Part shown: positions 1-33,500 of the stretch, piece by piece
Position numbering within the stretch: position 1 is the first letter of the stretch
Layout: every line of letters starts with the position of its first letter
DNA from: Cycas panzhihuaensis
Lineage: Eukaryota > Plantae > Cycadophyta
DNA length: 64,000 nt
Reading direction: 5' to 3'
Assembly (NCBI GenBank): GCA_023213395.1
Contig: CM041465.1
Span: forward strand, 45,453,741 to 45,517,740
The notes under the pieces: generated by a model
Databases searched by the model: none
What the model was told of the DNA's origin: nothing
What the model saw: the letters and a program-made list of their open reading frames with translations, nothing else
Position numbers and translations under genes: made by a program

Positions 1-2330
1 AGACATAAAGTATATTCATTCATAGATAGTTTCATTGGATATAATCAAGTTAGAATCATAGAATACCGGTTGAAGATGACCTTTATTATAGAGTGGGGGA
101 CTTTCGCATATACAATCATACCCTTTAGATTTATGAATGCATGGACCACCTTCTAAGGGATAATTCTGAATATTTTTTGACAAGTAATTGGTAAGTCAAT
201 TGAAGTATTTTTAGATGATTAGATAATTTATTCATTACTAAAGGATCATTTGGAAAATCTATGATTGATGTTAGAAATATGTTGAAAAAGTAAATTTTGC
301 TTGAACCTAGCAAAATGTATATTTATAGTTCCCTCGAATCTTTATTGGGACATATTATGACTAAGGAAGGACTATGAATAGATTCAAATATAGTAGAAAT
401 TATTTTAATTTTTTTTGCACTAAAGACAATGAAGCAGGTAAAGGTTTTTCTTGGTATGACAGGTTATTGCTATAAATTCATTAAGGGATACATATAGATT
501 ATAAACCCTCTAGATAATTTGCTCAGAAAGAAATAATTTGGTGATAGGAACTGTGGTAGCAATTAGTATTTAATTTATTAAAGAAAAAAATCATAAAAGC
601 TCCTATTTTGAGATTTCCAAATTGGGACTTCCCATTTCACATACATGTTAATACTTCATTGATTACAATTAGATGTGTCTTAACTAAACCAGGCAACATT
701 AACATGGATTTTCCCATTTATTTTACTAGTAGGAAATTAATGCATGCTGAACAAAACTATTCAATTACTAAAAGAGAAAACTTAGGCATGGTTTATGCTT
801 TAAAAAAATTTAGATATTATCTATTAGCCAACCCATTTATCTTCTATGTGGATCATTAGGCCTTAAAATATTTGATAAACAAGCCCATTTTGTAAGGTAA
901 TATGAGTAGATGGTTGATGCTATTTCAAGAGTTTAATTTCAATATTATTGTCAAGAAAGGAGAATAACATATTATACCTAATATACTATTGAGGGAACTA
1001 GATGGTAAACCAACTACATGAGTGCCAAATGATTTTCTTAATACTCAATTATTTTCTGCGGAGGCTATATCAAAATGTTACAAAGGGATTGCAGGGTACT
1101 TATCTACTGGCCAAATACCTAAAGGTTTAGAACGAGTGGAACGACAAAGTTTTATTCATAAAACTTTTCCCTTCCAATTGATATGAGGAATATTATATAA
1201 GCTTGACTAGATGGTGTGTTGAGATGATGCATACTAGAACATAAAGTACAAGGCATCCTACGAGAAGCTCATGAAGGAGTCATAGTTAAACATTAAGGCA
1301 TGGAACCCACAATTCAAAAAATTCTATTAACAAGTCTCTAATGGCTATTAATGTTTGAAGATATTGTGAAATAGATAAAGAGTTGTGACATCTACCAATT
1401 AGTGGGTAAACCCGACATGTGTCATGTTATACCCTTACATCTAATTCTAGCATAAGCACCCTTTGAGAAATGGGGATTAGATTTCGTTAGACTGATAAGT
1501 CATCCTATAAAGTGGGTGAATACTAGATACATATTAGTAGCTATTAATTTCTTTACAAAATAGACGAAAGCCTAAACCTCATACAATGTGATGCTATAAG
1601 TACCACAAAGTTTTTATATGAAAATATTATTATCCATTTTGGTTATCCCTTAAAATTAGTATTAGATTAGGGTAGTAGTTTTTTAAATAGTACGATAAAA
1701 CATTTAACTAATGAATTTATAATTTAGTATTATCAATCTTCTCCTTATTACCCTAGAGCTAATGGCCAGGTTGAGAATACTAATAAAATTTTGAAAATAA
1801 CTCTATCTAATATCTATAGTGAAGGAAGAATGGATTGGGTAAAATGATTACATTTTGTCCTTTAGGCAAACTAGATAACGATTAAACAACCATATAAGTA
1901 GACATCCTTTTAGTTGGTTTACAACTTAGAAGTGATACTTCCATTGGAATTCTAAGCAGAAAGCTTTTGGGTAGTCATCTAGTTATAAATAAATAAATAG
2001 GACTCATGGAATAAAATGATCATTGAGTTTCTAAATCTAGATGAAAGAAGAGTGCAAATATTATGGGAATTAAAGATCAAGAAACATCAACAAAAAACCT
2101 AGCATGATCAATACTTATAGTTACCATAATTTTATGAGGGTGACTTGGTGTTGATATACAATAGTAAATTTCAAACAAAACTAGGTAATTTGAAATTATA
2201 TTAGTTAGGGTCATATAAGGTAATTTACATCAATAAGAATAGGGAAATCCAACTTAGACAACTTGATGGCAAGATTCTTTTGAAGGTGGTAAATGGTAGT
2301 AGGTTGAGTCCATACACAGTGAGATTAAAA
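1..2330 (+). mobile_element. Degenerate Ty3/Gypsy pol (RT, RNase H, integrase), running off the 5' edge of the window
   Basis: Manual translation gives YSFIDSFIGYNQV..TFIIEWGTFAY (RT), EVFLDD (~205), ORF 608-859 FHIHVNTS..AEQNYSITKRENLGMVYALKKFRYYLL (RNase H), REAHEG..CDIYQ, APFEKWGLDFV (~1460), SPYYPRANGQVENTNK (~1740) and a GPY-like LGSYKV (~2205). RT-RH-INT order is Gypsy. Many stops. Confidence 0.93.
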
Positions 2331-4902: not shown

Positions 4903-6335
4903 TATCTATATCTATATATATATATATATACATATATATGCTTATCAAAAGAAACAAGGAAAGTGATCTCATGTAAATATCCTTAAAATAAGCACCATAT
5001 ACAATGTTAACTTCACCTATTATGCATGTAAAGTGTTCTAATGATTATAGGAAAAAGGGATAAAAGTAAGAAAGAAAGGTAGCCTCAGAATGGCTAATCC
5101 TCCAAATGGAATGTCTCCACATATCTAAGCACTCAAACCAGTGGATCAAGAAAGAATCTAAGTTCCTCTAATAGTAAAAAGGACAAAAAAATTTGTATAT
5201 GGAAAATGTTGCAAAAGGTAAAAATACTACAAATGTTACAAAAGTTGCAATATGTAACTTTTACAAGATTTATAAAAGTAGAGCTGAAACTATGTGAATC
5301 ACAAGGAGATGCTTCTAAAAACTAGATTTCACAAAGGCATGAAGGCTGGGTGCAAGCATAGTAAGATTGATTAAGAAGTGAGTCATGTATAAAAGAATTT
5401 CTAGGTAAAACAATATTACAAAATATAAGAGAATATATATGGGTTGTTTCAAGATGATAAAATAAAGAAGAATTCAAAGCCTATAATATTTTGGCTTTAG
5501 TAGGTGGAGAATTGAAGATATGTACATGGAAATATATAAATCTAAATAATAAGGTTACAACACTTTATTAGTGAAGTATTCTTTGAATAAGAGATGGATT
5601 GTAGTGATCCCAATCTATTAAGGAGAAGTTAATTTTATTATTATTATTAGTGAGTTGGTATTTTTAAATTAATATGAAGTTAATTTTTATTTTAAGAAGT
5701 TAGTATTTTATTATTAATATTATTATTGAATTTAGTTTTTTAATAGAGAACCATATTGGCACTTATAAATAAGGGATATCCTTATTTTATTATATAAGTT
5801 TTATTTTTAGATTAATCTTAATTTTATTTAGAACTTGGTGCCTAGGGTAATTTTGTGTATTTAGCTTTCCTTTTTATTTGAGGAAGTAGATCAAAATTAG
5901 GAACACATTCTTTATATACATAATAATATATTTAATAAAAGTTATAGTACATAAAAATGAAAAGATAAATTTAATTCTTTAGATTCTCTATAATTTAAGA
6001 ATTTATAAATTTATAAATGTACTTATAAATCTCATAGAAAGAAAAGAGAATAACTGGTATGCATGCCAAAGGTGTATGGTTAATCTATTATGATGTATAT
6101 GAGTTATGTAAATAGATGAATTACAAGTTTATTAATTCTTGTGTTCCTTTTATTTACAATTTATATATGCTACAATAGAAACCAAATTATATTTTAATAA
6201 ATATAGTGTGAATGATATAGAAGAAACCCTAAATATATGATAAAATTTACTATTTATTATCCTTCCTCCTATGGTAAGGATGGATAGTATTTCCTCTAGC
6301 AAGAATGTAAAGGAAGACTTAATAAGGCCCAAATA

Positions 6336-6480
6336 GCTCTGATACCAAATGTATTTTTTATAGGAAAAAAAAGTAGGCTCAAATAGCTCTGATACTAAAT
6401 GTAGGAAATAAAATGTAGCCCCAAGTAGCTTTAATACCAGATGAAGGAAAATAATGGAGCTAAACCAAGCTCTGATACCA
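6336..6480 (-). repeat. Tandem PBS/LTR-end array at the 3' LTR of element A (4 PBS copies)
   Basis: gctctgatacca-like 12-mers at 6336, 6386, 6428 and 6469 (reverse complement TGGTATCAGAGC, complementary to the tRNA-iMet 3' end), each adjacent to 2 nt + TG. Confidence 0.95.
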
Positions 6481-7149
6481 AATGAAGGAAATAATATGTA
6501 AAGAGAACATGACAGAACATGAATCTAATAATCAAAACTCAATAGATCAATGTAGCATGATAGTATAAACAATAATCATTATATATTCAATCCATTGTGA
6601 TAGAGAAAGCTTTACAAATTTCCCAATATAGGCAGTGTCTTAAGACATCAAGGTTGCACACCCCTCAATATTGATAATTTTGGGGGAGAAGGGAAACTCG
6701 TCAACCCCTAAAATTTAAATTATAATAAAATAATATAAAGTTAACTTAAAGTAGACTTAACTCAAATTAACATTAACTTACCTACACATGTTGAGAACCC
6801 ACATGTGTAAATTAAGAAAGATGAGGTGTGCTCCCTTGGTTGGAAGGTGGGAGTGGAGTGATGACTATTAAGTCTAACATTCTCCCCCTTAATGGTCATC
6901 ACGAACACTTGTATCTTCTCTTTGAACTTATAGAACTTGTACTTGAAAAAAATTTTAAAATATATCCTTTAACTTGATCTTTATCAACTCGCTTTATCCT
7001 TATAGCAACATGTGTCCTTCTATCATAAAGTGGTAAAAAAAATCTATAATTGAATGAAGCTTGATTTATACAAAAATGAATAGCTACAACTTTGACTTTA
7101 ACTTCTAGAAATTTAACTTTAACTATCATATCATTAGGTCTCTTTCTTG

Positions 7150-7240
7150 TCATATCATAAGATTCATTCTCTGATATGTCATAAGATTCTTTCTCTATCA
7201 TATCATAAGATTCATTCTCTGTCATATTATAAGATTCATT
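7150..7240 (-). repeat. ~21-bp tandem repeat x4 (ENESYD-like) in the 3' tail of element A
   Basis: ataagattc unit repeated; ORF 6899-7225 reads TENESYDMIEKESYDISENESYDM. One clear unit in element B (~23105). Confidence 0.85.
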
Positions 7241-7384
7241 CTCCCCCTCAAATAGAGGATCAAGTACTTGTGTAGCAAGTTGGTCCTATATTTGATCTGA
7301 ATCTCTATTGGTTTTGTCATTACAATTCATGTGTTCTATCACATATCTCACATGCTCATTAAAAACAACATCAAATACATTAAG

Positions 7385-7645
7385 AGTATCTCCCCAATAA
7401 GTGGAAATCAAAATATCCCAAATGGATTTAAAAGTAGTTAATTCATAAACTCTAGAAACAACATCATCATTTATAATGAAAAATAATAAACCTAAAACTT
7501 CATTATCTTTTCTAAAATTTTCTTTAATACTAAGATCATATTCATGTTACAAATATTTCTAAAGATTATGTTTAATAAAATAGTCTTGCATAGTCTTGTG
7601 CCATAGTGAAAAATTGTGCCCATTGAATATAGAAAATTATGTCAT
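7385..7645 (-). pseudogene. Copia gag N-terminal remnant (element A)
   Basis: IFNGHNFSLWHKTMQDYFIKHNL..KDNESLGLL..TTFKSIWDIL, matching the Copia gag start pattern (F.G.N...W; A/S..W..L). Confidence 0.8.
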
Positions 7646-10600
7646 TTTATCAAGAAAAACTTTAGTACATAAAAGGTATGCTTTTACCAAGTCAAAAGGT
7701 CAATAAACCAATGAATATATATGGTTTCAAATAAACTTTTTGAAGGAGATGTAATACCCTTTAAAAATGAATGAACTAAATGCAACCTTTATAGGTGCAA
7801 CAAGGAAATAAACATTTCAATAATGATAAATGCTTTCAATATATGTATGCCTTTGGAATAAACTTAGAAATATGATGAATATATATGTAGATTTGAATGT
7901 TCTTTAACTATACAAATCTGAAATAAACTTTGATGATAAAAAAAATCCTTAACCTTTTGATTTTCTTCAAATGAATGAATACAACCTTTACTGCAATAAA
8001 TCATTTGCCTTGATAATAATATATAATGATGAAACTAAAATGTATATGAATATTTTCAATTTGAAATATAACAAATATGAAGAAACGTTTAAACAAAAAA
8101 GTATTGTACTCCTTAAAAGAAAGATTTAAAGGATAACCTCAAGTTTAGCAGCTTCAAAGTTGTGCTAAATAGTATTAGAATAAGATAAAATTTTACCAGT
8201 ATGAAGATTAATAAAATATATATCCAATGGAACTAATCATTTTAAAAACACATTCCTACAAGTCAAATTTTGATGAATCAAAGGTACAAGCCTCTTTTTT
8301 AGGCTTAACAGGAGCACAAAGCTCAAAATAGTATAAAAATGCCAATAAAACATTTGTAGAAAGATGTAAAATGGTCACATAAAGTTTGGAGAGCTTCTTA
8401 ATATATTTTTAGCTAAAAAGTTTTTAAAAATATATATAAAAATATGTAAAAATGGAAGATTTAAGGTAATTAAGTACCTCTGCTTTAATGCTTTTCAAAA
8501 TCAGTAAAAACACTTCAAAACTTACAAAAAATAATGTCAGTTCAAAGGGGAATTAAATTCTAATACAAAATAAAAAAGTTATAGCAGAAATAGTAGCAAG
8601 TATCTTTATGGGAATATGTTTAACAAGTACTAAAAAATACTAAAGTGCCACTTTCAACGATTAAAATAATGATCAAAATAAATTCTAAAAATTAAAATAA
8701 ATAGTTGGTAATAAAGTTTGTTGAAAGTAGATCACTATAGAATAGATCCAAGTAGAAAATAATCTCCCAGTAGAAAAATATAATCAGTTGAAAAAGTGAT
8801 TTTATAAAAAAATTTAAAAATGTTTAAAAAATGACAGATTGATTTTAAATCAACTGAAACGAGGTCAAATAAGGTCCAAATGGGTCATATGTCTAGTCAA
8901 AATCGATCTACGAAAATTTTCTGACATAATGAAACTAGTTTCGTCAGAAACTGATGATCCAATGAGGAGTTACGATAAAAATTTGCTAGTAACCCTATGT
9001 AAAATAAAAAAATTTTAAAAAATAAAAGGAAAAAAAGGTTAAAAACTTATGTTGGCCCATTTTAAGTAATGTTAAGGGTCACGTGAGAATGATGGTGACC
9101 AGGGGCTAAGAGTTGTTAAGGGGGCTAGGGTTTGAAACCTAGAATCTAAATTTTATGCAATTTAATTTAATTTTTTTAAACTTTAAAAATTAAAATTAAA
9201 ATTAAAAAAAGTTTGAATTTTGTTTTAAGAATGGGCCACCGTGGACCTGCAAAATTGCCGTTGCACAGAGCTTCTGCTGCCTGCACCTCCTATCACGTGC
9301 CTTGCATGCGGAGCCATGGAACCAGTTGTCATCGCTACGTTGAGGAGAGTGCACATGCTAGAGAGGAACGATGCTTAGAGGGGAAGATATACCAAGTGAA
9401 TCACCAATGGGAGACGCACTTTGTAAGGCTCGGTCGAATTATATTGAATTGAATTGAACTATACTGGGGTGTCGTTAAGGCCAACTAGCCACCATTGCAG
9501 TAGTACTACAATCGATGGAACAAGTAATGTATACGTAGTGGAGTGCTAGATATGGAAATGATGACCTAGCCAGACGGAAACATTTGTAGTTAGTAAAATC
9601 AGGCCTAAACCATAGGAATGGAAGAGCCAAGACGATGATCTATGTGGTCTGGTATTGAGAATAGCACTCTGCACAAGGATCACCCTTTGATATGTTATGC
9701 AGAATCTGAATGATAGAGTCAGAACACTCTCCACTATGTTTAAATAATCGTTTCGATCAATAATATCAATCATGAGGATATCTATGTATACATAGATATG
9801 AAGGGAAGTGGTGGGGGACTGAAGGCTATCATGTATGGTAGCAATTTTGGGAGTATTTCAGTGTCAAAAATAGGCAGTTTTACATAGGATAGGCTAATAA
9901 ACAGAGAGTAGAGACTGTAACACAAAGAGCAATGCGCAGAGAGATTGGCAGTGCAGGATGGAGGGTCGTGCCTGAATGAAGTGAGATATACAAAGTAGGC
10001 AGTTTTGGCCAATGATGAGTGCTTTGTATGATCAACTTATTATACAAGGAATGCTTTATATTTTATTTCTAGATTTAAACAAATCTTGATATTTAAGAAG
10101 TATCAATGCAACATTTCAAAGTTATGTTGGCACTACTTTATTAAGGAAGAAATGAGCAAATGAAACTTTTGGTGTGCGGTTTAAAGATTCTGATCACTCA
10201 ATGGCTGTCAAGTTTGTACATTTGTTATTAAATCATATGGAGACTAATTTTTGGGTAAGATTATTTGAGCATGATGGTTTGGCCGATGAAACAGAGAATC
10301 TGATGATTAAGTTAAAGTTTTTTTTTCTTATAAGCTTCAACCTTTCTTAATACGCAATGGCCTATCAATACTTTTCATGCAGAGACCAGCTACTTATAAG
10401 AAGTTATTTTCTAGTATATTATTGTCAATTTTTTATATATGAATTTTCTATTTTTCTTCTCCCTTATTAAAGTATAGAGCTTCTACTATACAAGATTTTG
10501 TGCTTTTAGTTTGCTCATGTACACCGGTTATGTGCTTTATGCTTTCCCTTCAAAAGGATTTTATTTACACCATTTAAATGTCTTTCTACTTGGTTTCAAT

Positions 10601-11930
10601 CTACTTTGGGCTGTAAGCACATATATGTTCAATGCAATTTTTATCTTCTCAAGGAAGGAATGATGAGATAGTAACAACAAAGTGATTGCATATATTTATT
10701 GACTATTATAATGGTGAATGCACTATGAACAAGAAATATCAATTTCAGAAATATTCTACCAACAACAATAAACACAACTTGACAAAAATGAAACTTGATT
10801 TATATGGTTGTTTTTGTGTTACAATAAAACCATAATGAACCAAGAAATTTTTAAATATTTTGAAGAGAGTATATCAGAAAAAATGCATATGTACTTGTAT
10901 TTAAAATTTTTCAAAATATGTGAAGCAGATATATCACAGAAATGAGAAATATATGTTTTAGATATGAAAAAAATATGAGAAACCTGGTAAACAATTGTAG
11001 CAGACTTCTTCAAACTTTTAAATGCATTCTCTAGTAGACAAATCTATTGTATATACTTCTCCAGAAGACTGAATATTCCCCAAAAATTGTAGATCTATAA
11101 AAAACTTGAAGAAATGATCAAATATATGTTAAAAAAATATAGATCTAAACTAAATGTTATAGATCTGCAATAAATATACCAGAAAATATTGAAATAATTG
11201 TTAAAATAAGCATATATAAAATAAGACTTAATAAATATTATGGATTTTAAGCTAAATATTATAGATCATATGTAAGTATAGCATATCTAAAAAATATAAG
11301 GTAGAAAATGGTGAAATATTTAATAAAATAAGTAAATCTAAAAAATATGTGGCAAATCTGAAGAATATTTAGCAGATCTGAAGTAGACTATAGCAAATCT
11401 TGAAGAAAACTAATATGAATATTACATGTAGTTGAAAACCTTTATATATCTGAGAAAATATTAGATAAATAGACAGAAATATTCTTGAAAAATGCCAAAT
11501 ATATGATAAAAAATATAGATCTGAAGAAATATAACTTAAATTTAAAAAAACTCTTAAATAAATATTGTATGTAGCTAAAATTCTATGCAGATATAAAAAG
11601 ATATAAGATAAATAGATAAAATATGCTTGAATATTTGATAAAATATATAACTTATTGATAAAAAAAACTCTTGTAGAGTGATAAAACTTGATATTTTATT
11701 ATTTTCAGCTATACACCTACATAAATCTTGAGGAAATCTAAAATATCTTTGTTATAACATAAGTATATCTTCAAGAATAAATAGATCTATAATAAAAATA
11801 TAAGAATCTGCTGAAAAAACTTACAGAAAATAAATATTACAAATCTTTCTTGCTGTGAGTAAATCTACCTCAAGATGCTAATAAATCTTGTTACTCTTCT
11901 TCAAAAACTTCAACAGGCTAGCAATCGTCT

Positions 11931-12066
11931 GCTTTGATACCAAATGTAATAAAATAAAGTAGGCCCAAATAGCTCTGATACCAAATATAGGAAATAAAAT
12001 ATAGTTCCAAGTAGCTCTGATACTAGATGAAGGAAAATAATGGAGCTAAACCAAGCTTTGATACTA
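11931..12066 (-). repeat. Tandem PBS/LTR-end array at the 5' LTR of element A (3 internal copies plus the boundary PBS)
   Basis: PBS-like 12-mers at 11931, 11972, 12014 and 12055; spacing 41, 42, 41 bp. Confidence 0.95.
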
Positions 12067-14182
12067 AATGAAGGAAATAATATACAAGGAGAATAGGGCA
12101 TAACATGAATCCAATCATCAAAACTCAATAGATCAATGTAGCATGATAGCATAAACAAGAATCATTGTATATTCAATCCATTATGATAGAGAAAGCTTTA
12201 CAAATTTCCCAATATGGGCAATGTCTTAAGACACCAGGGTTGCACATCCCTCAATATTGATAATTTTAGGGGAGGAGGGAAACTCCTCAACCCCTGAAAT
12301 TTAAATTACAATAAAATAATATAAACTTAACTTAAAGTAAACTTAACTCAAATTAACATTAACTTACCTACACATGTTGAGAACCCACATGTGTAAATTG
12401 AGAAAGATGAGGTGTGCTCCGCTGGTTGGAAGGTGGGAGTGGAGTGATGACTAATAACTCCAACAATTTTCCTTTAGCATATATTGTTTTAAGAAGGCCT
12501 CATAAGAGGTAATATTAGATTAAAACATGAGTTTATTGTACGTTCTTAAGAATATCCTCTTAACAAAGTAATGGAAGTGTAGTTTATGAATAGTAGGATG
12601 CCTATGGTATCCTTATCATATGGGATCAACAAATGCATAGCTATAGTTATTTCTATTATTTAAAGATCCATAATAAAGGAATGAAATGAGAATTTTTATT
12701 GTGTGTAATAACCAAGAGTTAAGGTGTGATTTCCCTCTTGTATGATTATATCAATAATGAAGACTCTTTAGAGTAGTTTCTAAAACCACTTGAATGGGTT
12801 AGTCTACCTAATTTATGAGGAGTATATTTTTATTTCTATTAGGATGGACCTTATAAATGAATGTATCATTGAAGTTGGAACCTTTAAATATGATGATTGA
12901 TTATACACTTGTATACTTAATGCACCATAATTAATTAATAAAAAGTATCTCTTCAAAAGGTATTGATTACCTCTTTAAGTAAGAGAGTATCTAATGCACC
13001 TAAAAAGAGGATGTGTCTTGCCAAGGAGTAGTAGCTATTCATAACCTTATATGTCTAAAAATAGTCCTTAGACACCATTCCTATAATTGATATTTAGGAA
13101 TAACATCTTAGAGATCAGCATTGTATAGAATCAATGTGCACAACATGGTTCTAATCGAGGGCTAGGATAAATACATATAAGAATTCCTTATGGTGGGTTA
13201 CAATACCAAATGACTTCTCATTCCATACCTACTAATAATTTGTGCCTTTACCTATTGAATTATGACTCTTAACCATGTTGGGAAAGGTATGAATTATAAT
13301 AGTGCTAACATACTCAAATCGAATTGAGAAAGTTAGACGTTAGAAGTAGAAAACCACCATTATGTTTTCACAAAGCCAAATATTAATATAATGTCCTAAC
13401 TCATCGAGATAATTTCCACCCTAAAAAGAAGTTGCAATGTAACTAGCCTAGTGTAATAACTATTTATAATAAAAATACTTATAAAAGTGTATAAAATGAG
13501 AAATTATTAAGTTTCCAATTATAACAATTCATGATATAAGAACATAACAACCATTAGTTACTAATAGCAAATGCATCTAAATAAAAATTGAATACAATTC
13601 TCAAAAATACCTATGAAAGATGAAATAAAACATTAAAAGAAAAAAAAAGGAAGAGAGAGAATAATAGAAAGTGGGCTATATAGAAATGTTGCCCACACTT
13701 TTAAACTATATTTCATGAGACAAGATAAGGAATTTAAATGACAAATTCAAAGGCAAATTATTTTTATCAATATAAAGAATACCCCTTCCATGATAAGGGT
13801 AGTGTCTTATCATCATTAATAAACTATACCTATATGAATGGTTTTCAAATAAAAACACCTTAGTTTATTAGTTGATAAAATATGATACAATTAGGTATTA
13901 ATTCATCATTAAAGGATGAAAAAGTATATGGAAACATACCATTATATGTGTGTAAGGGGAAAATAATATTGCTAATATATATAAAAGAATGAATGAATAA
14001 TGGAGAAATATAGATAGGTTATAAGATAAAAATAACTATAACTTGAAAAAAAGAAAAATTCACTTATATTAGCCATGACTTTATATTCACTGATATGATT
14101 AGAAATGTAGTATACTCAGAAATGCTTACAAACAAAATTGTATATGACTCTTTTTATAATCAAATAAAGGTGCATATAAACA

Positions 14183-17100
14183 AGCATTTTGATATTAACA
14201 TGACCAAGTCATCAAAAGATAGGATAAGTTATTATTGATATATCTTTTAAAATATACATTAATAAATCATGCTTTCAAAATTATTTTTATAACAAGTATG
14301 TATCTCGAGAAAAAAGAATAATATAAATAAGCATTTTGAAATTAATATGATTAAACCATTAAATATATAATAAATTTATTTAAAAATTAACCATAGGATA
14401 TCATTTCTAGGAACAACAGAACAACATCATAATATTTCCATTATGGTCTTCGATAATCATTCATAACATATCTCACCTATTACATATATATATATATAGT
14501 CATATTGTAGGCATATGTGGGATCATTTGTCTCACTTACATTTAATAATCTTTGGCATTTTTATTGACCAATTAAACATGACCTTTAACTTATCCAATTA
14601 TATTTTAAGAGATAAATGTGAATTATATTCTAATACTCCCCCATAATGCATATTAGTTTGTATACCAAGATTTTTTCCATGTTAAAAGTACCTGGCTTTT
14701 GACAATGCTTTGGTGAGAATATTTGTAACTTGGTCTTCAATTTTATAATGCTGGATTAATTCTCTAATGTAATGATGTTTGATTTTAATATACTTTATTC
14801 TATTATGCATAATTAGATTCTTAGTCATTTGAAATGTACTTTAGTTATCATATAATATAATTGTTAGTTCTTATTGAGGTTGATGTAAATCTTCTAGATT
14901 TATTCTCATCCATGTTGTTACTTCAACTGCTTTGTACTTAGCTTCTATCATAGATCAAGAAATTATTGATTATTTCCTTTTGTTCTAGGCTATTAATACA
15001 AAATCAATATTGAATACATATATTGAAATAGATTTTTTATCTTTAATATCACCTGCCTAATTTATATATGAATAACTAAGTAGTCTAAATTCATCTAAAG
15101 AAATATACCACATCTATAGTTTAGTGTTACTTTAATATATCTTAGAATTCTCATTATTATATCCCAATGCTCTCTTTTAGGTTATGATATAAATCTTGAT
15201 GTTAAATTTACTACATACACTATGTTTGCTTAAGTATTCATCAAGTAAATTAAATTTCCTATCAATTGATGATATAAAGTAGAATTAACTAAAATAGAAT
15301 CTTCATTTTTACTTAACTTCAACCTAAATTCAATAAGAGTAGAGATTGACATACAACCACTCATGTTGAATTTATTCAAAATGTCCATAACATAGTTGTT
15401 TTATGACATGTAGATGATACTTTTAGTTTGCTAATTTCTCGTGATAGGAAAATAATATAGTTGTCCTAAATCTATCATTTTAAATTTTGAGTTCATGTCA
15501 TTTTTAAATTATTAGAACATTTCATCACTATTTATTATGTAGATGAGATCATCAACATAAAGAGAAATTATTAGAATTGGACTTTTTATTATCTTGACAT
15601 ATATATTTGAGTTTAATGGGCTTTTTTGAAATCCTTTAACCTAAAAATATTTACTAGTCTTAGAATACTAAGCTATTAAGGCTTATTTTAGTCCATGAAA
15701 AGCTTTCTTTAACTTACATACCAAGTGTTTATGTCCTTCAACTTCAAATCCTTAAGGTTGAATAACATAAATTTCTTCATCAATATATCTATTAAGAAAT
15801 GATGACTTAACATCCATTTGATAAATGGCCCAACTTTGATTAGTAGTTAAAGATAAGATACTTTTGATAGTATCCATTCTAGTAACAAGAGCAAAGGTTT
15901 CTTCATAGTTGATACCTTCTTGTTATGCATATCCCTTTGCTATAGTTCATGCTTTGTATTTGTTAATTTAGCTATCAACTTTATATTTTGTTTTGCATAC
16001 CCACTTTATACTAATCATTTCTTTATCATCAAGTAACTCTACTAAATCCCATGTTTCATTTATATAGAAAGAATCATATTCAACTTCCATTGCTTCAATC
16101 TATTTTTCATTTTCAACTTCTTCAAAAGAATAAGATTCATCATTTTGCATTCCTTGACTCATTAATACAAAATTAAATCTTACTTGAGATCTTATCAACA
16201 TTCTATTAGAATTTTTATTAAGATTTACTATAGGATTATGACTTTTAATATACCATTTTGGACCTATAATGTATTTTTGACTTAGGTTGGATGATGAACT
16301 TGAATTTAGAATAGATGAAGATGAAGTTTGAGGTGGTTCTATATTAGCTTCAACTATAACATGTTTTCTTTTATCTTATTCAAGTTTGAAGATCATATCT
16401 TTGCTCACAAAGAACTTCTTTATTATTGGATCAAATAGTCTATAGGCTTTTTGTTCACTTGAATATCCTATAAAAATTCATTTATCACTTTTGATTTTAG
16501 GGCATTAGTCCCTTTCACTGTTTAGAACTTGATCACTTATATTACTACATGTGATTGCCTATTGATTAGATGGGGGCTCCACAAACTTTAATAAAAAAAT
16601 ATAATTTGATTAAATTAAGTGAAAACTTTATAAAGAAAATATGCCAAAGTTGATATCACCCTACATGCATAAATTTTATTAATAGGTAATGAATTTCTAT
16701 GTGATTTGTAAATTGATGGACTGATGGCTATTTTCTCCTCTTCACAAACTAGTAGGGCGAGATCTCCATGTATTGGGTGAGCTTGTCGATCTTTTTAGCT
16801 TAGCAATGGCTCATGAGAGGATGTAGGGCAGATGGAGTAGATGGAAAGTATGTATAGGCAATAGATATTAATGGTGGGAATCTAGCTTAGATATTTATGC
16901 AACCACATAGTTGATCACAAATACATAGAGAATAATAACTTCATAAATGGAACAAACACATGGGCATTAGTGGATAGGAGTTATTTCATAGATAAAGGTC
17001 CTCACATAGGTTGGCTCTTCATGAGAGGACATTCACGAAGGTGAAGTTGATTCACTAACATCATAATGAATAGAGGGTGAGTTTGGTGGTGTTCCACATA

Positions 17101-18125
17101 GACAATGGCTCATAGGAGGAAGTACAACCTTAATGCAAAGACACATAAGTACAAGAGCAAAGGCTTAAATGTATAATAGGATGCACATAGTCTAAGGAGC
17201 ATAAGGCTTTTATATACAAGTAATTATATGGAGTAGGGGCATCATACAGATATAGACAAATTCCATATTAGGATGTAAATAGATAGTCATAGTGAGAGAG
17301 ACCAATATGTAAGGGTTTCCAAATAGATTTCATAGTCACACATGTTTCATAAATGAGGATGAAATCAAATGGGCTTAACCAAAATCAAAGTATAAACAAA
17401 CAAATTTTAAATGGGTTGAAACAGGGATAAATAACCAAAATAATGATTTTTGGTTATTTATGTGTATATTCAAAATAGATTCTAATGGGATGAAATAAGT
17501 TTACCATTTTCACAAATGGGTAATCTTATAGAATAACCAAATAGACTTTAAGTAATATTTTGGCAGACTTTTACCATTTAGTAGGCTATGGGACCCTTAA
17601 TGACTAACTTAGGCATAAATAATATATCATGAAATAATTAAACTATAAAAATGAATAAATTCTTGACTTATGGAATAGGCTTGAAATGACTCAAGGCAAC
17701 TGACACTCCTTAGTCAGATAGTACCTCACTATGTCTCCTTATTTTAGGTTCTCATATCTACCAATGCTCTGATAGCATGTTAGAAAATTAATCATAGGAT
17801 ATTATTACCCAAGAATAATACAACATCATAATATTTCTATTATGATCTTCAATAATTATTCATAATACATCTCACCTCTTACATGTATATATAGTCATGT
17901 TGTAGGCATATGTAGGATCATTTCCCTCACTTACATCCAATAATATTTTATTTTTATGTTGACTAATTAAACATGATATTTAAATTAGACAATTACATTT
18001 TAAGAGACAAATATGCCTTATATTCCAATAAGGTTGTTATTAAGATATCTTTTAAAATATATATTAATATGTAATGTCTTTAAAATTAATTTTACTCTAG
18101 GTATATACCTTTAAAAAAAGAATTT
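14183..18125 (+). repeat. ~148-bp tandem duplication whose second unit is split by the Copia at 14377-18030
   Basis: agcattttga.attaa.atga at ~14183 and ~14330. The continuation gatatatcttttaaaatatacattaat..aaaaaagaat recurs at 18040-18125. Confidence 0.75.
14377..18030 (-). mobile_element. Old, internally deleted Ty1/Copia element (RT-RNase H retained; gag and most of the integrase missing)
   Basis: LTRs ~14377-14635 and 17778-18030, PBS 17766-17777 (gctctgatagca), PPT 14636-14642, degenerate TSD aaatt/aggtt. Motifs YQMDVKSSFLN, SLYVDDLI and IFTKAL on the minus strand at 14650-16150. Confidence 0.9.
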
Positions 18126-20609
18126 AAATTAACTTTGACTACAAATCTTCTAATGTTATAAGTATTCTAAAAAAAAGAAAGAAAAACATATGTAATAATT
18201 ATACCAAGTAAGTATATTAAAGAGACCTAATAAACTAACTTACTTTTTAAATTGAGGGTTATTAATAACTAAGGACAATGATCTCTCCATAGTAGGTAGA
18301 GATATTATAAGAGTGAATTTTACCCATACAATAACCCTCAAATGATTAAAATCCTTATTGATTACATAAAAAAAAATTAAAATTATAAGGAAAAGTTAAG
18401 TGATAATGGTTAGGAGAAGAAGAGATGTTTTACACAATTATTAGGAAAGCCTCTTAAGTTAACTTCAAGTCATAAGGCAACCATGAAGAGTAATGTAAGA
18501 GATGGGTTTTTATTTGCCAATGAAGAAGTAAGCCCTTGAGATAAGACTTCCTCTCCTTGAAGCACTCTCTTATGTAATCATACAGAGACTAAGGCAAGGC
18601 ATCCTATTTGTTGGGTGTAATGTCATCACTCAACTCCCTCTTACCTACCAGGATTGTGCACCTCAATTTAGACATGTGATGCTCAACATGTCCAGGTAAG
18701 TTAAGGTAAGTTGAGTTAGTTTCATTTGAGTTAAGTTAGTATTATTTTATTATTAATTTGAATTCAGGGGTTGAGGAGTTTCCCTCCTCCCCCAAACTAT
18801 AAATGTTAAGGGGTGTACAACCCTGGTGTCTTTAGACACCACCTACTTTTGAGGAAGATTTGGAATACTCATTCTACTACAATGGATTGAACATCAAGGC
18901 TCTCATGGTTTTATGCTATTGTAATGGTGATACACTGATGTATTTGATGCAATCTTGATGCAGAGCTTAGTTTGGCTCATAGTTTACAAGCATATTTTCC
19001 TTCATTTTGGTATCAAAGCATTGTGGCTCCATATTTTTTCCATCATTTGGTATCAGAGCAGGCGATTGCTGACCTGCTGAAGTTTTGAGGAAAAGCAACA
19101 GGATCTATTGGCACTCTACAACAGATTTCTTTTACAAGCAATATATATTAACTAGATTAGTTTTCTGAAATTTTTAGCAAGTTCTATATATCATTTTCAG
19201 CAGATTTTGATTATTTTTGAGCTATATTTCTGGTTCAACAAATATTACTGAGATCTATTTTCAGATTTGTGGAGATCTACAAAGGATTTTCAATAGCAAA
19301 CTATATACTCTCAAGTTTATTCTTATATTTGAGTTATTTTACATTCGGATCTCTGATTTATCATATATTTTGACAACTTACAAGTTTTTTATCTACTTAT
19401 CGATATTTTTGCAGTTGTAAAAGAGCATCCGTTCCATATAAAAGTTATCAAGTTTTTTCAGAGATCTACAATTTATTACTTTAGATCTGCTATTTTTTAC
19501 TATAAATATGCTTATTTCAACAAGTTTTCAATATTTTACATTATATTTGTTCATATCTGTCATATTTTTTGCTATAGATCTGCTATACTAAGGCCAGATC
19601 TACAACATTTACATAATATTTTTGCGGATCTCTGGGTCTCACTTGGATCCGAGATTTTTCATCATTTGGTGATATTTTCTACAAGTTTTTCAATGATTTA
19701 TTATATTTTTCAATAGATTCACTCATTATTGGGTTATTTCTTATGGTATAACAAGTATATTCAGTGTTTTTTCACAAGATTTGTGCAGATTCATAAAAGC
19801 TTTTTCTAGCTACAAGCTATATTTCAATCTACAAAAGATAGCAATTGCATATCAGCAACTTTTGAGGCATTTTCAACCATTCGAAGAAGTATATGCAGCA
19901 GATCTATTTGTTGAAGAATACACTTGAACGTTTGAAGATCTCATGTGTAAGGGTTAACCTGCTACAAGTCTGCAAATTAGCTTACCAGGTTCTTTGAGAG
20001 TTCTTTTTTCAAATATATACATATATTTCATATATTTGATGCATTTTTTGTGGATATATTTACACATCTAGTTATTTTTTGTGAATATACTCAAAAAAAA
20101 AATTGGTTTATTTGGGATAACTGAGTAAGTGAACTGAATATACAAATATACATATATTTCCTATGTATTTGTTGTTACTTTCTTAATAAGCTTTGGAATC
20201 ATTTACTGTATTTATGTCCTCTCAGCATTCTCTGTTTGTGTGGTCTTCCATTTGTAGCATTCCTTTATCCGCATAATCTTTCGTGTTTGACTTGTTACGT
20301 TTTTCTTGTATACCTTGAGATCATATTAATCCTGCAAATATAGTTTCCCCTTTTGCAAATATATTTTCTCTTTTATTTGAGTTCTCTTTTGAGCTATCTT
20401 CCCATATTCACTTGTTTTTTTCAAGAAAAACCTTTGTAGACCCTCCTGAAACTTCCATCAATACTTCCGATCAAACATATTCAAAGCATACAACCCATGA
20501 TATAGTTCAGCTGTGTGAGACAAACCACCCTTATAGGGCATACCTATGTTTGATAATCTCTCCAACTAAATTCTTTACTTTGTAATCTGATAAACATATA
20601 AGCAGGTTT

Positions 20610-21245
20610 CATAACTTGCTCTCCGCGTCTCGGCTCTTTGTGGTCCTGCGTCACCTGTTAGCATTCGTTGCGTCCTGGCAGGTTGGGTCTCGACTTTCTG
20701 TGGCCCTGTGTCACCTATTGGCGTTCGTTGCATGCAGGTTGGGTCTGCGGGTCCTAGTTCGCCCCTCTGTCTCCCGTAGATCTGCGGGCTTATTGTCGCC
20801 GTCTTCCTGCGCCCTCCGCCTGATGCTCCGTCGCGATCCGTACCTCCATCGGCGCGCTGCCCCATTGTGCAGATCCCTCGCCGATCGCCGCGTCTCTGCT
20901 CCGTCGCCCTCGGCCTCAGCGTCGATCCGTACCTCCATTCGGTTGCATACGATATCCGCTTCGCCTCGATCAACCGTTATGCGGATCTCGCGGCTCCACG
21001 ATGCTCTCGCCTCGGTCAACCGTTGCGCAGATCCCTCGCAGCTCCGGCCGATCGCCGCGTCTCTCCGTGCCTCCATCGGCGCGCTCCCTCGGCGTCTCGG
21101 CCTCTGTACCTCCATCGGCGTCGCCCTCATATCCGTGCTCTCCTCTGCGTGCCCGTTCATTGCGTTGCCCGTATTGGGCGTTGGGCCGTCCTCGCTATCC
21201 GTGCAGCAGTCTCCCTTAGGACGTTGGGTTTCAAGAACGCAGCAG
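20610..21245. repeat. CpG-rich island made of shuffled short repeats inside element B
   Basis: A ~58-bp direct duplication at 20632-20750, and recurrent modules gatccgtacctccat, gcagatccctcgc, gccgatcgccgcgtctct, tcgcctcg.tcaaccgtt. Confidence 0.9.
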
Positions 21246-21457
21246 CGTTCATTTGTTTGTTGAGTTTTTTATTATTGCGTATACATATATATGTATATTA
21301 ATATATATACAGAGACTTTAGTCTTTTAGTTTTTTAAGTGCGCCCGACTTTGGGGCGATTTTATTATTGTTTTTTATATAGTGCAGGTCTCCCGCCTTTC
21401 TGCACTCTTACGGCAGCAGTTGTTTTCATTTCCTTTTTATATAGATTTTAAGTTTTA

Positions 21458-21493
<36 letters not shown>
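21458..21493. repeat. (AAT)n microsatellite, about 12 units
   Basis: Read directly from the sequence. Confidence 0.95.
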
Positions 21494-21501
<8 letters not shown>

Positions 21502-22696
21502 TTAATTATATACATTTTTTAAAATTTGAGTGTTTAAAGAGTTTAACGTATTTGACTGCTATTTCCTTGGTTTTATCTTGTTATCACGTGACCGTTTGCC
21601 ATTTCAAAAGAGTTATTTCATCTTTTATAAAAAATTTTATTTTTATTTTTTTAAATTTTTTTATTTTTATATAGGGTTATTGGCACTTTTTTGGCCATAA
21701 CTTCTTTTTGGCTCATCGGTTTCAGACGAAACCTGCGCCATCAGATCAGAAATTTTCCGTAGATTAATTTCGACTGGTCATAAGACCGATTTGGTGCCCA
21801 TTTGACCTTGTTTCACCCCTTTTAACATTGGACTTTCGAAATTTCAACAGTTTTTACATTTTTTGACAAAATCGGTTTTAGAACTGGCTGCTATTTATTG
21901 TTGGCAAACTGTTTTGTATCCAAATTTTTTCTATTGTGATCTACGTCATATAGACTCTAATACCCATCTTTTACTTTTATTTTTTGACTTCATTTTTACT
22001 AATATTTTAATCGTTAAAATAAGAAAATTAGTTGATTTTACTTGTTTCTTGAACATTCTCCATAAAGATACTTCTCACTTTTTTCACTATAATTTTTGCA
22101 ATTTTTATCAGATTTCATTTCCGTCAACTTCGTTGGGAAGCTGACTCATTTCTCTTCACTGTGATATATTTTTTCATATATTTTGACATATTTTGCTTAT
22201 ATTTCAAATCAGCTAAAGTTGAGTCATTTTATTGGCCTAAATCTACTTTTTTTTACACCTGTTTAATATATTCTTTCAAAATTTTCAATTGGCAAAATAT
22301 TAATTACTTTATCAATAATATTTGATCCCTTTTTCAGCTTTTCTAAGGATTAATTAGTACTTTTATACAATTTTTTGCCTACCCTGCTCCTGTTAGGCTC
22401 CATAAGGAGGTCCTTTTCTTAGCATCATTCAAAACGTGACTTATTGGTATCATTTTTCAAAACCGTCTATCTTATTGGATTCACATTTCAGCAATCTACA
22501 TATTGATAAATTTTTAAGCTATTCTGACCTCTTTCAATATAGTTTTCAATCTGTTAAAGTTGAGTATATATATACATCCTAACAAGCTTGTCTTCGTTCA
22601 AAATTTTAAAGAAAATTCTAGTTTATATCTCATTGTTTATTCAAGATTTCTACTTGATCTTATCATCATTTTCTTATTGATTAAATTACTTTCAAA

Positions 22697-22969
22697 ATTG
22701 CACAATTCCCCATTTTCAATGGCCATAACTATTCACTATGGTATGATACTCTACACACTTACTTTATTGAACGTAATCTTTTGAAGTATTTACAACATGA
22801 ATATGACCTTAGCCTTAAAGAAAATTTTAGGAAAGATAATGAAGTGTTAGGTTTATTATTTTGCACTATGACTGATGATGTCTTTTCATTGGTTTCTGAA
22901 TTTACAACATCTAAGTCTGTTTGGGATTTATTGATTTCCATTTATGGGGAGATATCCCATTGTATTTGA
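22697..22969 (+). pseudogene. Copia gag N-terminal remnant (element B), open for ~90 codons
   Basis: AQFPIFNGHNYSLWYDTLHTYFIERNLLKYLQ..KDNEVLGLLFCTMTDDVF..TSKSVWDLL, in frame with ORF 22781-22969. Confidence 0.82.
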
Positions 22970-24778
22970 TGAGACTTTTGATGAGCATGTGAGACAGGTG
23001 ACAGAACAGGTAGATCATAACGGCAACATCAATGAAGATTCAGATCAAATGCAGGACCACCTTGTTGCACTGATTTGATCCTCCATTTGAGGGGAGCATC
23101 ATGAAGACGAATCTTATGACATAACGAAGAATGAACACGGTGATATGACAACCGCTCAAAGCATAAAGAGTACAAAAGTTCAAGTCCAAATTACGCTTAT
23201 TCATCTACTTTTGCATCAAGTTTCATCTACCTATAGTCTTCCTACATCATTCTATAATAAAGAGATATATGTGACTATAAGGGTGAGAAGCATTGACAAA
23301 GATCAAGATTGGAATTTTAAAGTTTTTTCAAGTACCGTTCCACAAGTTCAAGGAAAAGATACAAGTGTTCGTCTTGACATTAAGGGGAGAATGTTGGGTG
23401 TAATGTCATCACTCAACTCCCTCTTACCTACCGATTGTGCACCTCAATTTAGACATGTGATGCTCAACATGTCCGTAAGTTAAGGTAAGTTGAGTTAGTT
23501 TCATTTGAGTTAAGTTAGTATTATTTTATTATTAATTTGAATTGGGGTTGAGGAGTTTCCTCCTCCCCAAACTATAAATGTTAAGGGTGTACAACCACGG
23601 TGTCTTTAGACACCACCTACTTTTGAGGAAGATTTGGAATACTCATTCTACTACAATGGATTGAACATCAAGGCTCTCATGGTTTTATGCTATTGTAATG
23701 GTGATACACTGATGTATTTGATGCAATACTGGTACAGAGCTTAGTTTGGCTCATAGTTTACAAGCATATTTTCCTTCATTTTGGTATCAAAGCATTGTGG
23801 CTCCATATTTTTTCCATCATTTACCATTGGAATATATAAATAGTGTTAGAATAATAATTTAAAAGGAAAAGAGATAGAAAGAGTCCATTTCTAAAGCTTC
23901 TCTAAAGATATTTCACCACACTCTAGTCTTAGGATAAGGAATTCAAATTCACTTAAAGAAAGACAAGTTACCCTTATGATTAAACTATTATTTTTATGCT
24001 TTATCACTATATTTATAAGTATGGAAGGATAATTAATACCAAAATTTCTTTGTTTTTCATTTAAATAAAGCTATTTTTTTAAAATAAAATTGTACTGGAT
24101 TATTATAAGAAACTTAGGATTGAAAAAGACATAAGACATATGGAGTTCGTAAAGACCTATTATAGTCATATGATTGATGATAGACTTGAACAACCCTACA
24201 TTTAGATATAAATGAAGAGTATAATGTGTATGAGGGCCTAAAACCTTCATACCCCTTAAACTACTAAAATTAGATGGAAGTTTTATCAAGAACAATCAAA
24301 TGAAGGCCTTTTGGCTCAACTAATTTTGTATGGACTTGCTCACAATGAAGGACATATATTTGATATGATAGAACCATACAATAATAATTACACCCAATAG
24401 AAACCATCTTTCCATTTCAAAAAATCATTTGAATGTACGAATAAATAGATTTTAAGAATAATAATCTTTAAAATATGATATCTTATGAATGCTTTAGTTA
24501 TCATAATTTAGTATTACATTTAATGGATTATAACATAAATGAATAAGCTAATAGACTTATAACCATATTTTAGTAAGAAGATTTAATAAGGAAATAATGA
24601 AATTTTAATAAGTATAGTGAATGATTATCTTTCATACATGTATTTGTTAATGAGTGAGCATGTTAAAGATGGGATACACATGAATTTAAGAAAGCTACTA
24701 TTGTGTAAATAGTATTTAAAACATCTAATATTATTAAATATCCCTTAGTAAGACTAACATTTTAAGGATGATTATAAT

Positions 24779-32229: not shown

Positions 32230-33500
32230 GACATCCTTTAGATACATAATAATGCATTTAATGAAAGTCATGGTATATAAAAAAGTAAATATAAATATTA
32301 TTGTTTATGTTATCCATGATTAAAGGTTTCATAAATGCACTTACAAATTTCATGGAAAGAAAAGAGAATTTATAGTATGCATGCTAAAGGTATATGGTTG
32401 ATCTATTATGATGCATATTTTTATGCAAATAGATAAGTTGCAAGTTTACTAATTCTCTCATCTTTATTTTAATTACAATCTATGTATGCCACAATATAAT
32501 CTAAATTACATTTTGATGAATATGGTGTGAATAATATGGTGAAACCCCTAAACATTAGATTAGACTTATTACTCATTATTTTCACTTGCATGGAAAGGAT
32601 GGATAATATTCCCTCTAGTAGGAATTATAGAGAAAGACTAGATTAGCTACAAGTATTTTCCATTTAGCACATGTTACTTTAAGAAGGCCTGATAAGAGGG
32701 AGTACTAGACCCAAAATTAAGTTTGTTATACCTTCTCACAAATATCTACTTGAAGAATACCTCTTAATGAGGTAGTGAAAAGATAGTTTATGAATACAAG
32801 GTTGCTTATGGCCTCATATATAGGATTGAGGATACCATAATTATAGTTATTTCTATGATTTAAAGAGCCATAATAAAGGAATAGAAAGAGAATTATCATT
32901 TTGTGGAATAACTAGGAAATAAGATGTGGTTTTCCTCTTATATGATGATATCAATGAGGAAGGCTTCTTAAAGTGGTTTCTAACACCACCATGATGGGTT
33001 AGGTTATGTGCATCATGAGGAGTGTATTTGCATGTTCGCTAGAATGAATCTTATGAATAAATATATCTTTAAGACTAAGACCTCAAACATCTTATATAAT
33101 TAGTCTACCATAATTAATTACTAAAAATGTTCCCCCTCAATAAGGGAGTGATTACCTATTTAAGTGGGGAGCTATCCAATATATATAAAAGAAGGAAGTG
33201 GCTTACCATAAAGCAATAGTTAGTAGTAGCACCTTATTTCTAAAAATGAGTATGAGGCATAATTCATATAATTAGTATATGAGAACTCCACCATGGAGAT
33301 GAGAATTATAGAGAATGGATGTGCATAAAATGGTTCTATCATGGGTCTAGAAGTAATGCATATAAGAATATTTTATGGTGGGTTATGGAACCAAATGACT
33401 TCTCAATTTTTACTTACTAACAAGTTGTACCTTCTCTTCTTGAATTGTTTAACAATTATCATTACCATTGTTATTATTATGACTCTTAATCATATTGGAG
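32230..33500 (+). repeat. Old dispersed repeat, copy 2 (uninterrupted counterpart of 5905-13285)
   Basis: Colinear similarity across the insertion point of element A; possible shared decayed reading frame. Confidence 0.85.

Follow-up and report, generated by a model that had tools for sequence, protein, structure and literature searches.

Two related non-autonomous LTR retrotransposons in the genome of Cycas panzhihuaensis have, inside both of their LTRs, a junction between LTR end and primer-binding site (PBS) that is repeated in tandem up to four times. The elements, A on the minus strand and B on the plus strand, lie in a 64,000-nt stretch of DNA that was analysed as a whole and is referred to here as the window. 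Both in theory and in annotation software, LTR elements are assumed to have a single PBS, located just outside the LTR. The class of element to which A and B belong is ordinary; the tandem array of LTR-end and PBS junctions appears to be undescribed, in that the literature searched gave no description of a natural array of this kind, an absence that is not in itself proof of novelty.

PBS arrays in the LTRs of elements A and B

The tRNA-iMet PBS 12-mer, TGGTATCAGAGC, occurs 12 times in the window with at most one mismatch, as compared to 0.17 occurrences expected by chance, and raising the tolerance to two mismatches brings in the units at 12055 and 6428. Tandem Repeats Finder describes 11931-12084 as a repeat of period 41 (3.7 copies) and 6362-6500 as a repeat of period 42 (3.3 copies), and a pattern demanding two adjacent units finds six matches in the window vs none in shuffled sequence. 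These counts bear out the PBS arrays noted in a preliminary description of this DNA, whose coordinates for elements A and B were also correct (Table 1). Each unit consists of an A/T-rich, LTR-like end (..CA) followed by 2-3 nt, the 12-mer, and a linker of 11-13 nt, and with all of these parts present in every unit, the earlier view of the units as complete junctions stands. The arrays, with a period of 40-42 nt, fill the final 90-150 nt of the A and B LTRs, a location that, going by the DNA sequence alone, would correspond to either U5 or R.

The preliminary description had named absence of the arrays from raw reads as a sign of misassembly. Logan contigs from four differently labelled organisms instead bridge the array (e.g., 11975-12083, 11858-11986, and 11842-11978) and, because A and B are diverged and each has the array in its two LTRs, it is not an assembly artefact. 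More broadly, the arrays might not be a feature of single LTRs at all, and might stem from misassembly, from a tandem arrangement of LTRs and internal regions, or from opposite-strand Pol III units that resemble tRNAs. A PBS-like unit does follow A's 3' LTR, as in tandem-arranged elements such as the metagenomic locus L002 described below, and the plus strand of the array resembles a tRNA 3' end. We nevertheless consider this family of explanations barely credible, given the independent contigs from four organisms and the lack of anything leader-like past 6336. The same lack of leader homology past the unit at 6336 led us to reject a repeating LTR-internal-LTR-internal arrangement, and a tRNA gene, SINE, or Pol III unit was likewise rejected, as ARAGORN found no tRNA in the window and Rfam no tRNA match in 5500-24500.

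Table 1. Features of elements A and B (positions in the window)
Feature	Positions	Strand	Remarks
Element A	6306-12465	-	non-autonomous LTR retrotransposon
A 5' LTR, 521 nt	11945..12465	-	TGTTGG at 12465 to ..ACA at 11945; from LTR pair alignment
A inner junction units u1-u3 of 5' LTR	11972..12084	-	12-mers at 12055-12066, 12014-12025, 11972-11983
A working (outermost) PBS	11931..11942	-	one transition off the canonical 12-mer; leader follows
A internal region	6891..11930	-	non-coding; leader and last ~600 nt common to B, middle differs
A polypurine tract AAGGGGGAGAA	6880..6890	-	directly before 3' LTR
A 3' LTR, four full junction units	6306..6879	-	12-mers at 6469, 6428, 6386, 6336
Element B	18609-23819	+	non-autonomous LTR retrotransposon, same family as A
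B 5' LTR, 437 nt	18609..19045	+	decayed unit 18956-18966 (11 nt); unit 19008-19019 with one mismatch
B working PBS	19048..19059	+	perfect 12-mer outside LTR; leader follows
B polypurine tract TTAAGGGGAGAA	23380..23391	+	
B 3' LTR, two inner units	23392..23819	+	units 23730-23740 (decayed) and 23782-23793; ends ..CCATCA

Class and kinship of the elements

Both A and B have the hallmarks of LTR retrotransposons, namely paired direct repeats with TG..CA ends, an iMet PBS, and a polypurine tract, with the working 12-mer lying 2 nt past the LTR end in each (11931 in A, 19048 in B). The LTRs of A are 91.4% identical over 522 nt (blastn; ends TGTT..ACA) and those of B 96.6% identical over 439 nt (ends TGTT..TCA). 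Between the two elements, identity is 76-80% for the LTRs, 79% for the leader that follows the working PBS, and 78% for the ~600 nt that precede the polypurine tract. A and B are thus non-autonomous members of one family of ~5-6 kb without coding capacity: the internal region of A holds no open reading frame longer than 108 aa and no Pfam match, B has no reading frame longer than 215 aa and no Pfam family, and in both the internal region extends over several kilobases without gag or pol, as in LARD-like elements. The start of A's 5' LTR at 12465 is confirmed by loose contig ends at that position, which read as the reverse complement of a polypurine tract; depth of contigs aligned to this LTR drops to about zero past 12483.

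Several narrower assignments were considered. TRIM elements are less than ~1 kb in total length with LTRs of 100-250 nt, and Cassandra elements additionally carry 5S rDNA in their LTRs. With total lengths of 5.2-6.2 kb, LTRs of 437-574 nt, and no Rfam 5S match, A and B belong to neither. For elements that lack coding domains and whose autonomous partner lies outside the window, membership in Ty1/copia is only suggested, by the combination of an iMet PBS with a short polypurine tract and a TGTT start.

Inspection of the flanks of A and B gave no target-site duplication of 4-6 bp: for B there is none at the element ends, and for A no matching 5-mer is found under either candidate 3' end. A control element in the window, C, does have one (ATTAC/ATTAT). 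The lack of duplications weakens the case for A and B as intact single insertions, leaves the class assignment unaffected, and is in line with A and B being recombinants within a family of many copies; LARD-like elements are described, in passages of a sugar beet survey, as often losing their target-site duplications via recombination (PMC13570524). Just past the 3' end of A, positions 6010-6100 are 86% alike to 32328-32418 beside element C, which means that A lies in or beside another repeat, and this may account for its missing duplication.

The two LTRs of A differ by a whole unit. Position 6350 in the 3' LTR is the homologue of the 5' LTR end, and the unit at 6336 occupies the place taken at the 5' end by the working PBS, making the 3' LTR one unit longer; a further LTR-end-like ..TTTACA is found at 6306, beyond the fourth unit. 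Three accounts fit this asymmetry equally well: in the second strand transfer, the end of the minus strand may have paired with an inner copy of the PBS; sequence between direct repeats may have been deleted afterwards; or A may be a recombinant of different elements.

Two further features of the region were observed. Between A and B lies an LTR element of ~3.9 kb on the minus strand (LTRs 14228-14635 and 17811-18132), whose single iMet-like PBS (17766-17777) is one mismatch off canonical and served as a control. The LTRs of B (18820-18866 and 23594-23640) give sub-threshold matches to the Rfam histone 3' UTR stem-loop, at 25.9 and 22.8 bits relative to a gathering score of 34. This stem-loop, GGTGTC-TTTA-GACACC, follows a TATAAAT box at a distance of ~30 nt and has a homologous hairpin in A near 12225-12245; it may mark the start of R, or be due to chance.

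The working PBS lies outermost

In both A and B, the outermost PBS is the working site. Element B presents the clean case: both of its LTRs contain the two inner units (18956 and 19008 in the 5' LTR), and the site at 19048 lies outside; the 3' LTR has no PBS after its end, so that the perfect 12-mer occurs only after the 5' LTR. In A, a leader homologous to that of B follows 11931, which identifies this site as the working PBS and places the three upstream units inside the LTR. With a leader that begins right after the outermost PBS in each element and is 79% alike between them, we can affirm the earlier proposal that the inner units are part of both LTRs and that priming took place at the outermost site. 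Such an arrangement is expected from the standard mechanics of reverse transcription, in which initiation at a downstream PBS copies an upstream PBS into both LTRs. Considered as one claim, the anatomy of the arrays together with distal priming is in our judgment highly probable. Other elements with an iMet PBS in the window (17766, 31457, and 37702) have a single PBS each.

As both elements in the window used their outermost PBS, neither copy shows inner priming. Nothing suggests that the inner sites are hidden, since folding of the array RNA is no stronger than that of shuffled sequence (z-scores of +1.7 and +0.2), and RNA structure concealing the array was set aside on these scores. Engineered retroviral vectors with two PBSs reportedly initiate at both (Voronin & Pathak 2004, as cited in PMC3902901). 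In A and B, each inner unit forms a full junction of ..CA, 2 nt, and PBS, and its site is probably still usable for priming.

Unit types and conservation of the PBS

Comparison of the linkers separates the units into two types. Type I comprises the innermost unit of A (u1) and the decayed unit of B, with an identity of 0.77, and type II comprises units u2-u4 of A, which have identities of 0.69-0.92 to one another; the better-preserved unit of B is nearest to the type II cluster, weakly so (0.69). With two linker types common to A and B, the array must be older than the split between the elements. The preliminary description had called the linkers variable, and they do differ between units, but the sharing of two types by A and B means that they are not simply variable. 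To judge from the sequences, the extra units of A are duplications of type II in which neighbours are most alike, and this likeness of neighbouring units only suggests the polar, iterative addition of units that had been proposed. The inner units number three to four in A and two in B, one of them decayed, consistent with the proposal that copy number differs between relatives, a point on which contigs from the wider family (below) also bear.

For the type I unit, agreement with the 3' end of tRNA-iMet reaches 17 of 19 nt. Past this point, the innermost linker agrees at 9 of 13 positions with what we take to be the complement of the tRNA T-arm, as compared to 3-5 for most other linkers and 7 for that of B's decayed unit, a likeness that we treat as no more than a lead. 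The likeness of type I units past 19 nt could reflect either an extended PBS or read-through into the primer at the time the first unit arose. The tRNA-iMet 3' end used here was checked over its first 19 nt against the small RNAs of PMC5846777, and also on a 16-nt caulimovirid PBS (bioRxiv 10.1101/2025.07.25.666790).

Between units in the window, identity is 88-92% for the 12-mer, 40-73% for the part that resembles the end of U5, and 18-61% for the linker, in keeping with the expectation that PBS positions would be more conserved than linkers. Within element A, 7 of 48 PBS positions differ between the 5' and 3' LTRs, all of them by transitions, relative to ~9% for the LTR overall. The PBS letters of A have therefore changed no more slowly than the LTR as a whole, and we see no constraint on them after insertion. 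Conservation of the inner sites is not general either, because those of B were imperfect already at insertion, one having the same transition in both LTRs and the other lacking one base.

These observations bear on the main rival account, in which the array is an inert minisatellite: one master copy fixed a single chance duplication, its inner PBSs are never used, and unit number changes by genomic slippage or unequal crossing-over. The decay of B's inner units, the pace of PBS change in A, which is equal to or above that of the whole LTR, and the priming of both copies in the window from the outermost site are all as this account would have it, and tandem repeats within LTRs are commonplace. 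Less easily reconciled with it is the persistence of the canonical 12-mer, with a correctly spaced CA, in the family majority in four organisms (see below), even as the flanks differ by 30-60%. We think this account somewhat unlikely.

The family in four organisms

Contigs of four organisms were aligned to 11700-12560 at a likeness of at least 80%. These contigs are short, and thousands of pieces were obtained per run, indicating an abundant family. At the four positions where the 12-mers of A's 5' copy depart from canonical, the canonical letter makes up 65-92% of the depth in each of the four organisms, and no further 12-mer position appears among the 40 best supported of 169 differences. 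The departure in A's working PBS is among the positions where most family contigs have the canonical letter. The preliminary description had proposed that PBS letters decaying as fast as the linkers would speak for a neutral duplication: after insertion, the PBSs of A decay as fast as the LTR around them, while across the family the canonical 12-mer is in the majority. That majority could also have come from a recent burst of one master copy.

Joints within contigs skip 41, 42, 87, or 128 nt, or jump backward over roughly one or two units. Each joint comes from a single contig at a depth of ~10, with a shorter side of 20-32 nt in a repetitive stretch, and some may be alignment effects; together, they are suggestive of copies with fewer or more units, the differences amounting to one to three units. 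Coming from four organisms, the joints would run against a unit number fixed across the family, which the preliminary description had listed as a mark of a one-off event, and, alongside the difference between A and B, they would extend the variation in copy number to other relatives. The 82-aa reading frame across the array was used as a query for further family copies and returned no candidates among predicted proteins.

On the U3 side (12222-12482), the initial ~250 nt of this LTR were recovered at 10-50 times the depth of the array part in all four organisms. The array-bearing LTR is accordingly a sublineage of a larger group, and the LTR looks chimeric, with an abundant U3 that is common to other LTR types, possibly including an autonomous partner.

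The depth of U3 is also relevant to whether the array has been selected for a function, such as the capture of primer tRNA and borrowed reverse transcriptase, or the titration of small RNAs that target iMet PBSs. In favor of such a function, copies of the family are very numerous and lack coding capacity, the innermost unit has its 17 of 19 matches to the tRNA-iMet 3' end, and candidates for small RNAs acting at iMet PBSs are found among 3' tRNA fragments and in the miR1511/miR5139/miR8155 group. Plant small RNAs with the tRNA-iMet 3' end reportedly act on the PBS of LTR elements to silence them, according to passages in PMC9780303, citing Surbanovski 2016, and in PMC5846777. On the other hand, most LTRs with the same U3 lack the array, and additional target sites could equally increase silencing. 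The commoner unit type, moreover, matches the tRNA over the 12-mer only, and a match of 12 nt falls below the usual rules of small-RNA targeting in plants. A selected function of this kind seems to us quite improbable.

Tandem PBSs in other sequences

Scanning metagenomes for pairs of adjacent units returned seven loci (L001-L007), of which two, L002 and L006, are true cases of tandem PBSs. Locus L002 (Ga0307517_10010457; 457-508, ~5012, and ~8558) is a plant contig with three LTRs of another family and a PBS after each; its first LTR has the LTR-end and PBS junction duplicated once with a 40-nt period, in what is a tandem-arranged element. Locus L006 (Ga0316626_10424950; 1019-1112, minus strand) has five PBS-like units with a 21-nt period, the last of which is a perfect 12-mer; a leader and an open reading frame of 146 aa without a Pfam match come after it, and the contig stops within the array. 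The other five loci were rejected, four of them (L003, L004, L005, and L007) as an unrelated 42-nt satellite (TAGTATTAGAGC..CCGC) that fits the degenerate pattern, and L001 as a chance match to the two-unit pattern. Separately, a 7.5-kb caulimovirid (L008, IMGVR_UViG_2706795495_000001) with Peptidase_A3, RT, and coat domains starts with two perfect iMet PBS 12-mers 21 nt apart (positions 1-33), and tandem duplication of the PBS is thus also found in a pararetrovirus.

Proposed origin and turnover of the arrays

The account that we favor for the arrays of A and B starts in their common ancestor, where a short stretch running from the LTR end through the PBS and into the bases just after it would have been duplicated in tandem. 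Priming at the outermost PBS would then copy all upstream sequence into minus-strand strong-stop DNA and, since this DNA would span everything upstream of that site, the inner junction units would join U5 and be inherited by both LTRs. From then on, the repeated 12-mers would offer several registers to strand transfers and copy-choice, allowing units to be gained or lost in each cycle, and unequal genomic recombination may contribute to changes in unit number as well. The outcome would be copies of differing unit number, along with A-like elements in which the 5' LTR has one unit fewer than the 3' LTR. Inner sites may be used occasionally, and as each use would rewrite the PBS from the tRNA, used sites would be expected to keep canonical 12-mers even as the other parts of the unit diverge. 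Change of unit number during reverse transcription and use of the inner sites are the parts of this account that we infer. As a whole chain, running from junction duplication through distal priming and register-shifting to occasional inner-site use, it falls for us just on the probable side.

A bolder version would have a self-extending, register-shifting LTR in which any unit may start reverse transcription and set the LTR end, with the array serving a non-coding parasite of another element's enzymes as a landing pad for primer tRNA, or soaking up small RNAs that silence elements at iMet PBSs. This we regard as unlikely.

Comparison with known systems and significance

In most respects, A and B resemble the non-autonomous LTR retrotransposons of plants known as LARDs, with which they share TG..CA LTRs, a TGGTATCAGAGC PBS, a polypurine tract, the absence of gag and pol, and a high copy number. 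They depart from described elements of this type, in which a single PBS lies directly past the 5' LTR, in carrying 2-4 complete LTR-end and PBS junctions per LTR. A census of 115 families in sugar beet covers PBS types, and its passages on PBSs and tandem repeats make no mention of PBS arrays (PMC13570524).

The closest analogue is found in engineered retroviral vectors with two PBSs, where there is also more than one PBS per genomic RNA (Voronin & Pathak 2004, cited in PMC3902901). Those vectors are laboratory constructs with the sites far apart, whereas the arrays of A and B, known here from DNA, are natural, heritable, and variable in number, and are made up of short units. Tandem repeats in LTRs and the arrays formed by Cassandra elements (PMC7215508) are similar in that the repetition is linked to LTRs and copy number shifts by recombination or template switching, but they consist of promoter or UTR motifs or of whole LTR-internal units, and the unit repeated in A and B is an LTR-end/PBS junction of 40-42 nt. 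Like the miR1511 family and 3' tRNA-iMet fragments, each unit has tRNA-iMet 3'-end sequence on its plus strand; unlike small RNAs that are directed at the PBS in trans, the array yielded neither a hairpin precursor nor small-RNA evidence.

The arrays have practical consequences, as they will mislead both the calling of LTR boundaries and the dating of insertions by LTR divergence, with the LTRs of A differing by a whole unit. They would also offer several potential target sites per transcript to PBS-directed silencing, whether by tRNA fragments or by the miR1511 group, and they amount to a natural experiment in the choice of start site by reverse transcriptase, in strand transfer over repeated homology, and in the growth of LTRs. 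If the register-shifting reading is true, the family would provide a natural system in which the choice of primer site sets the length of the LTR.
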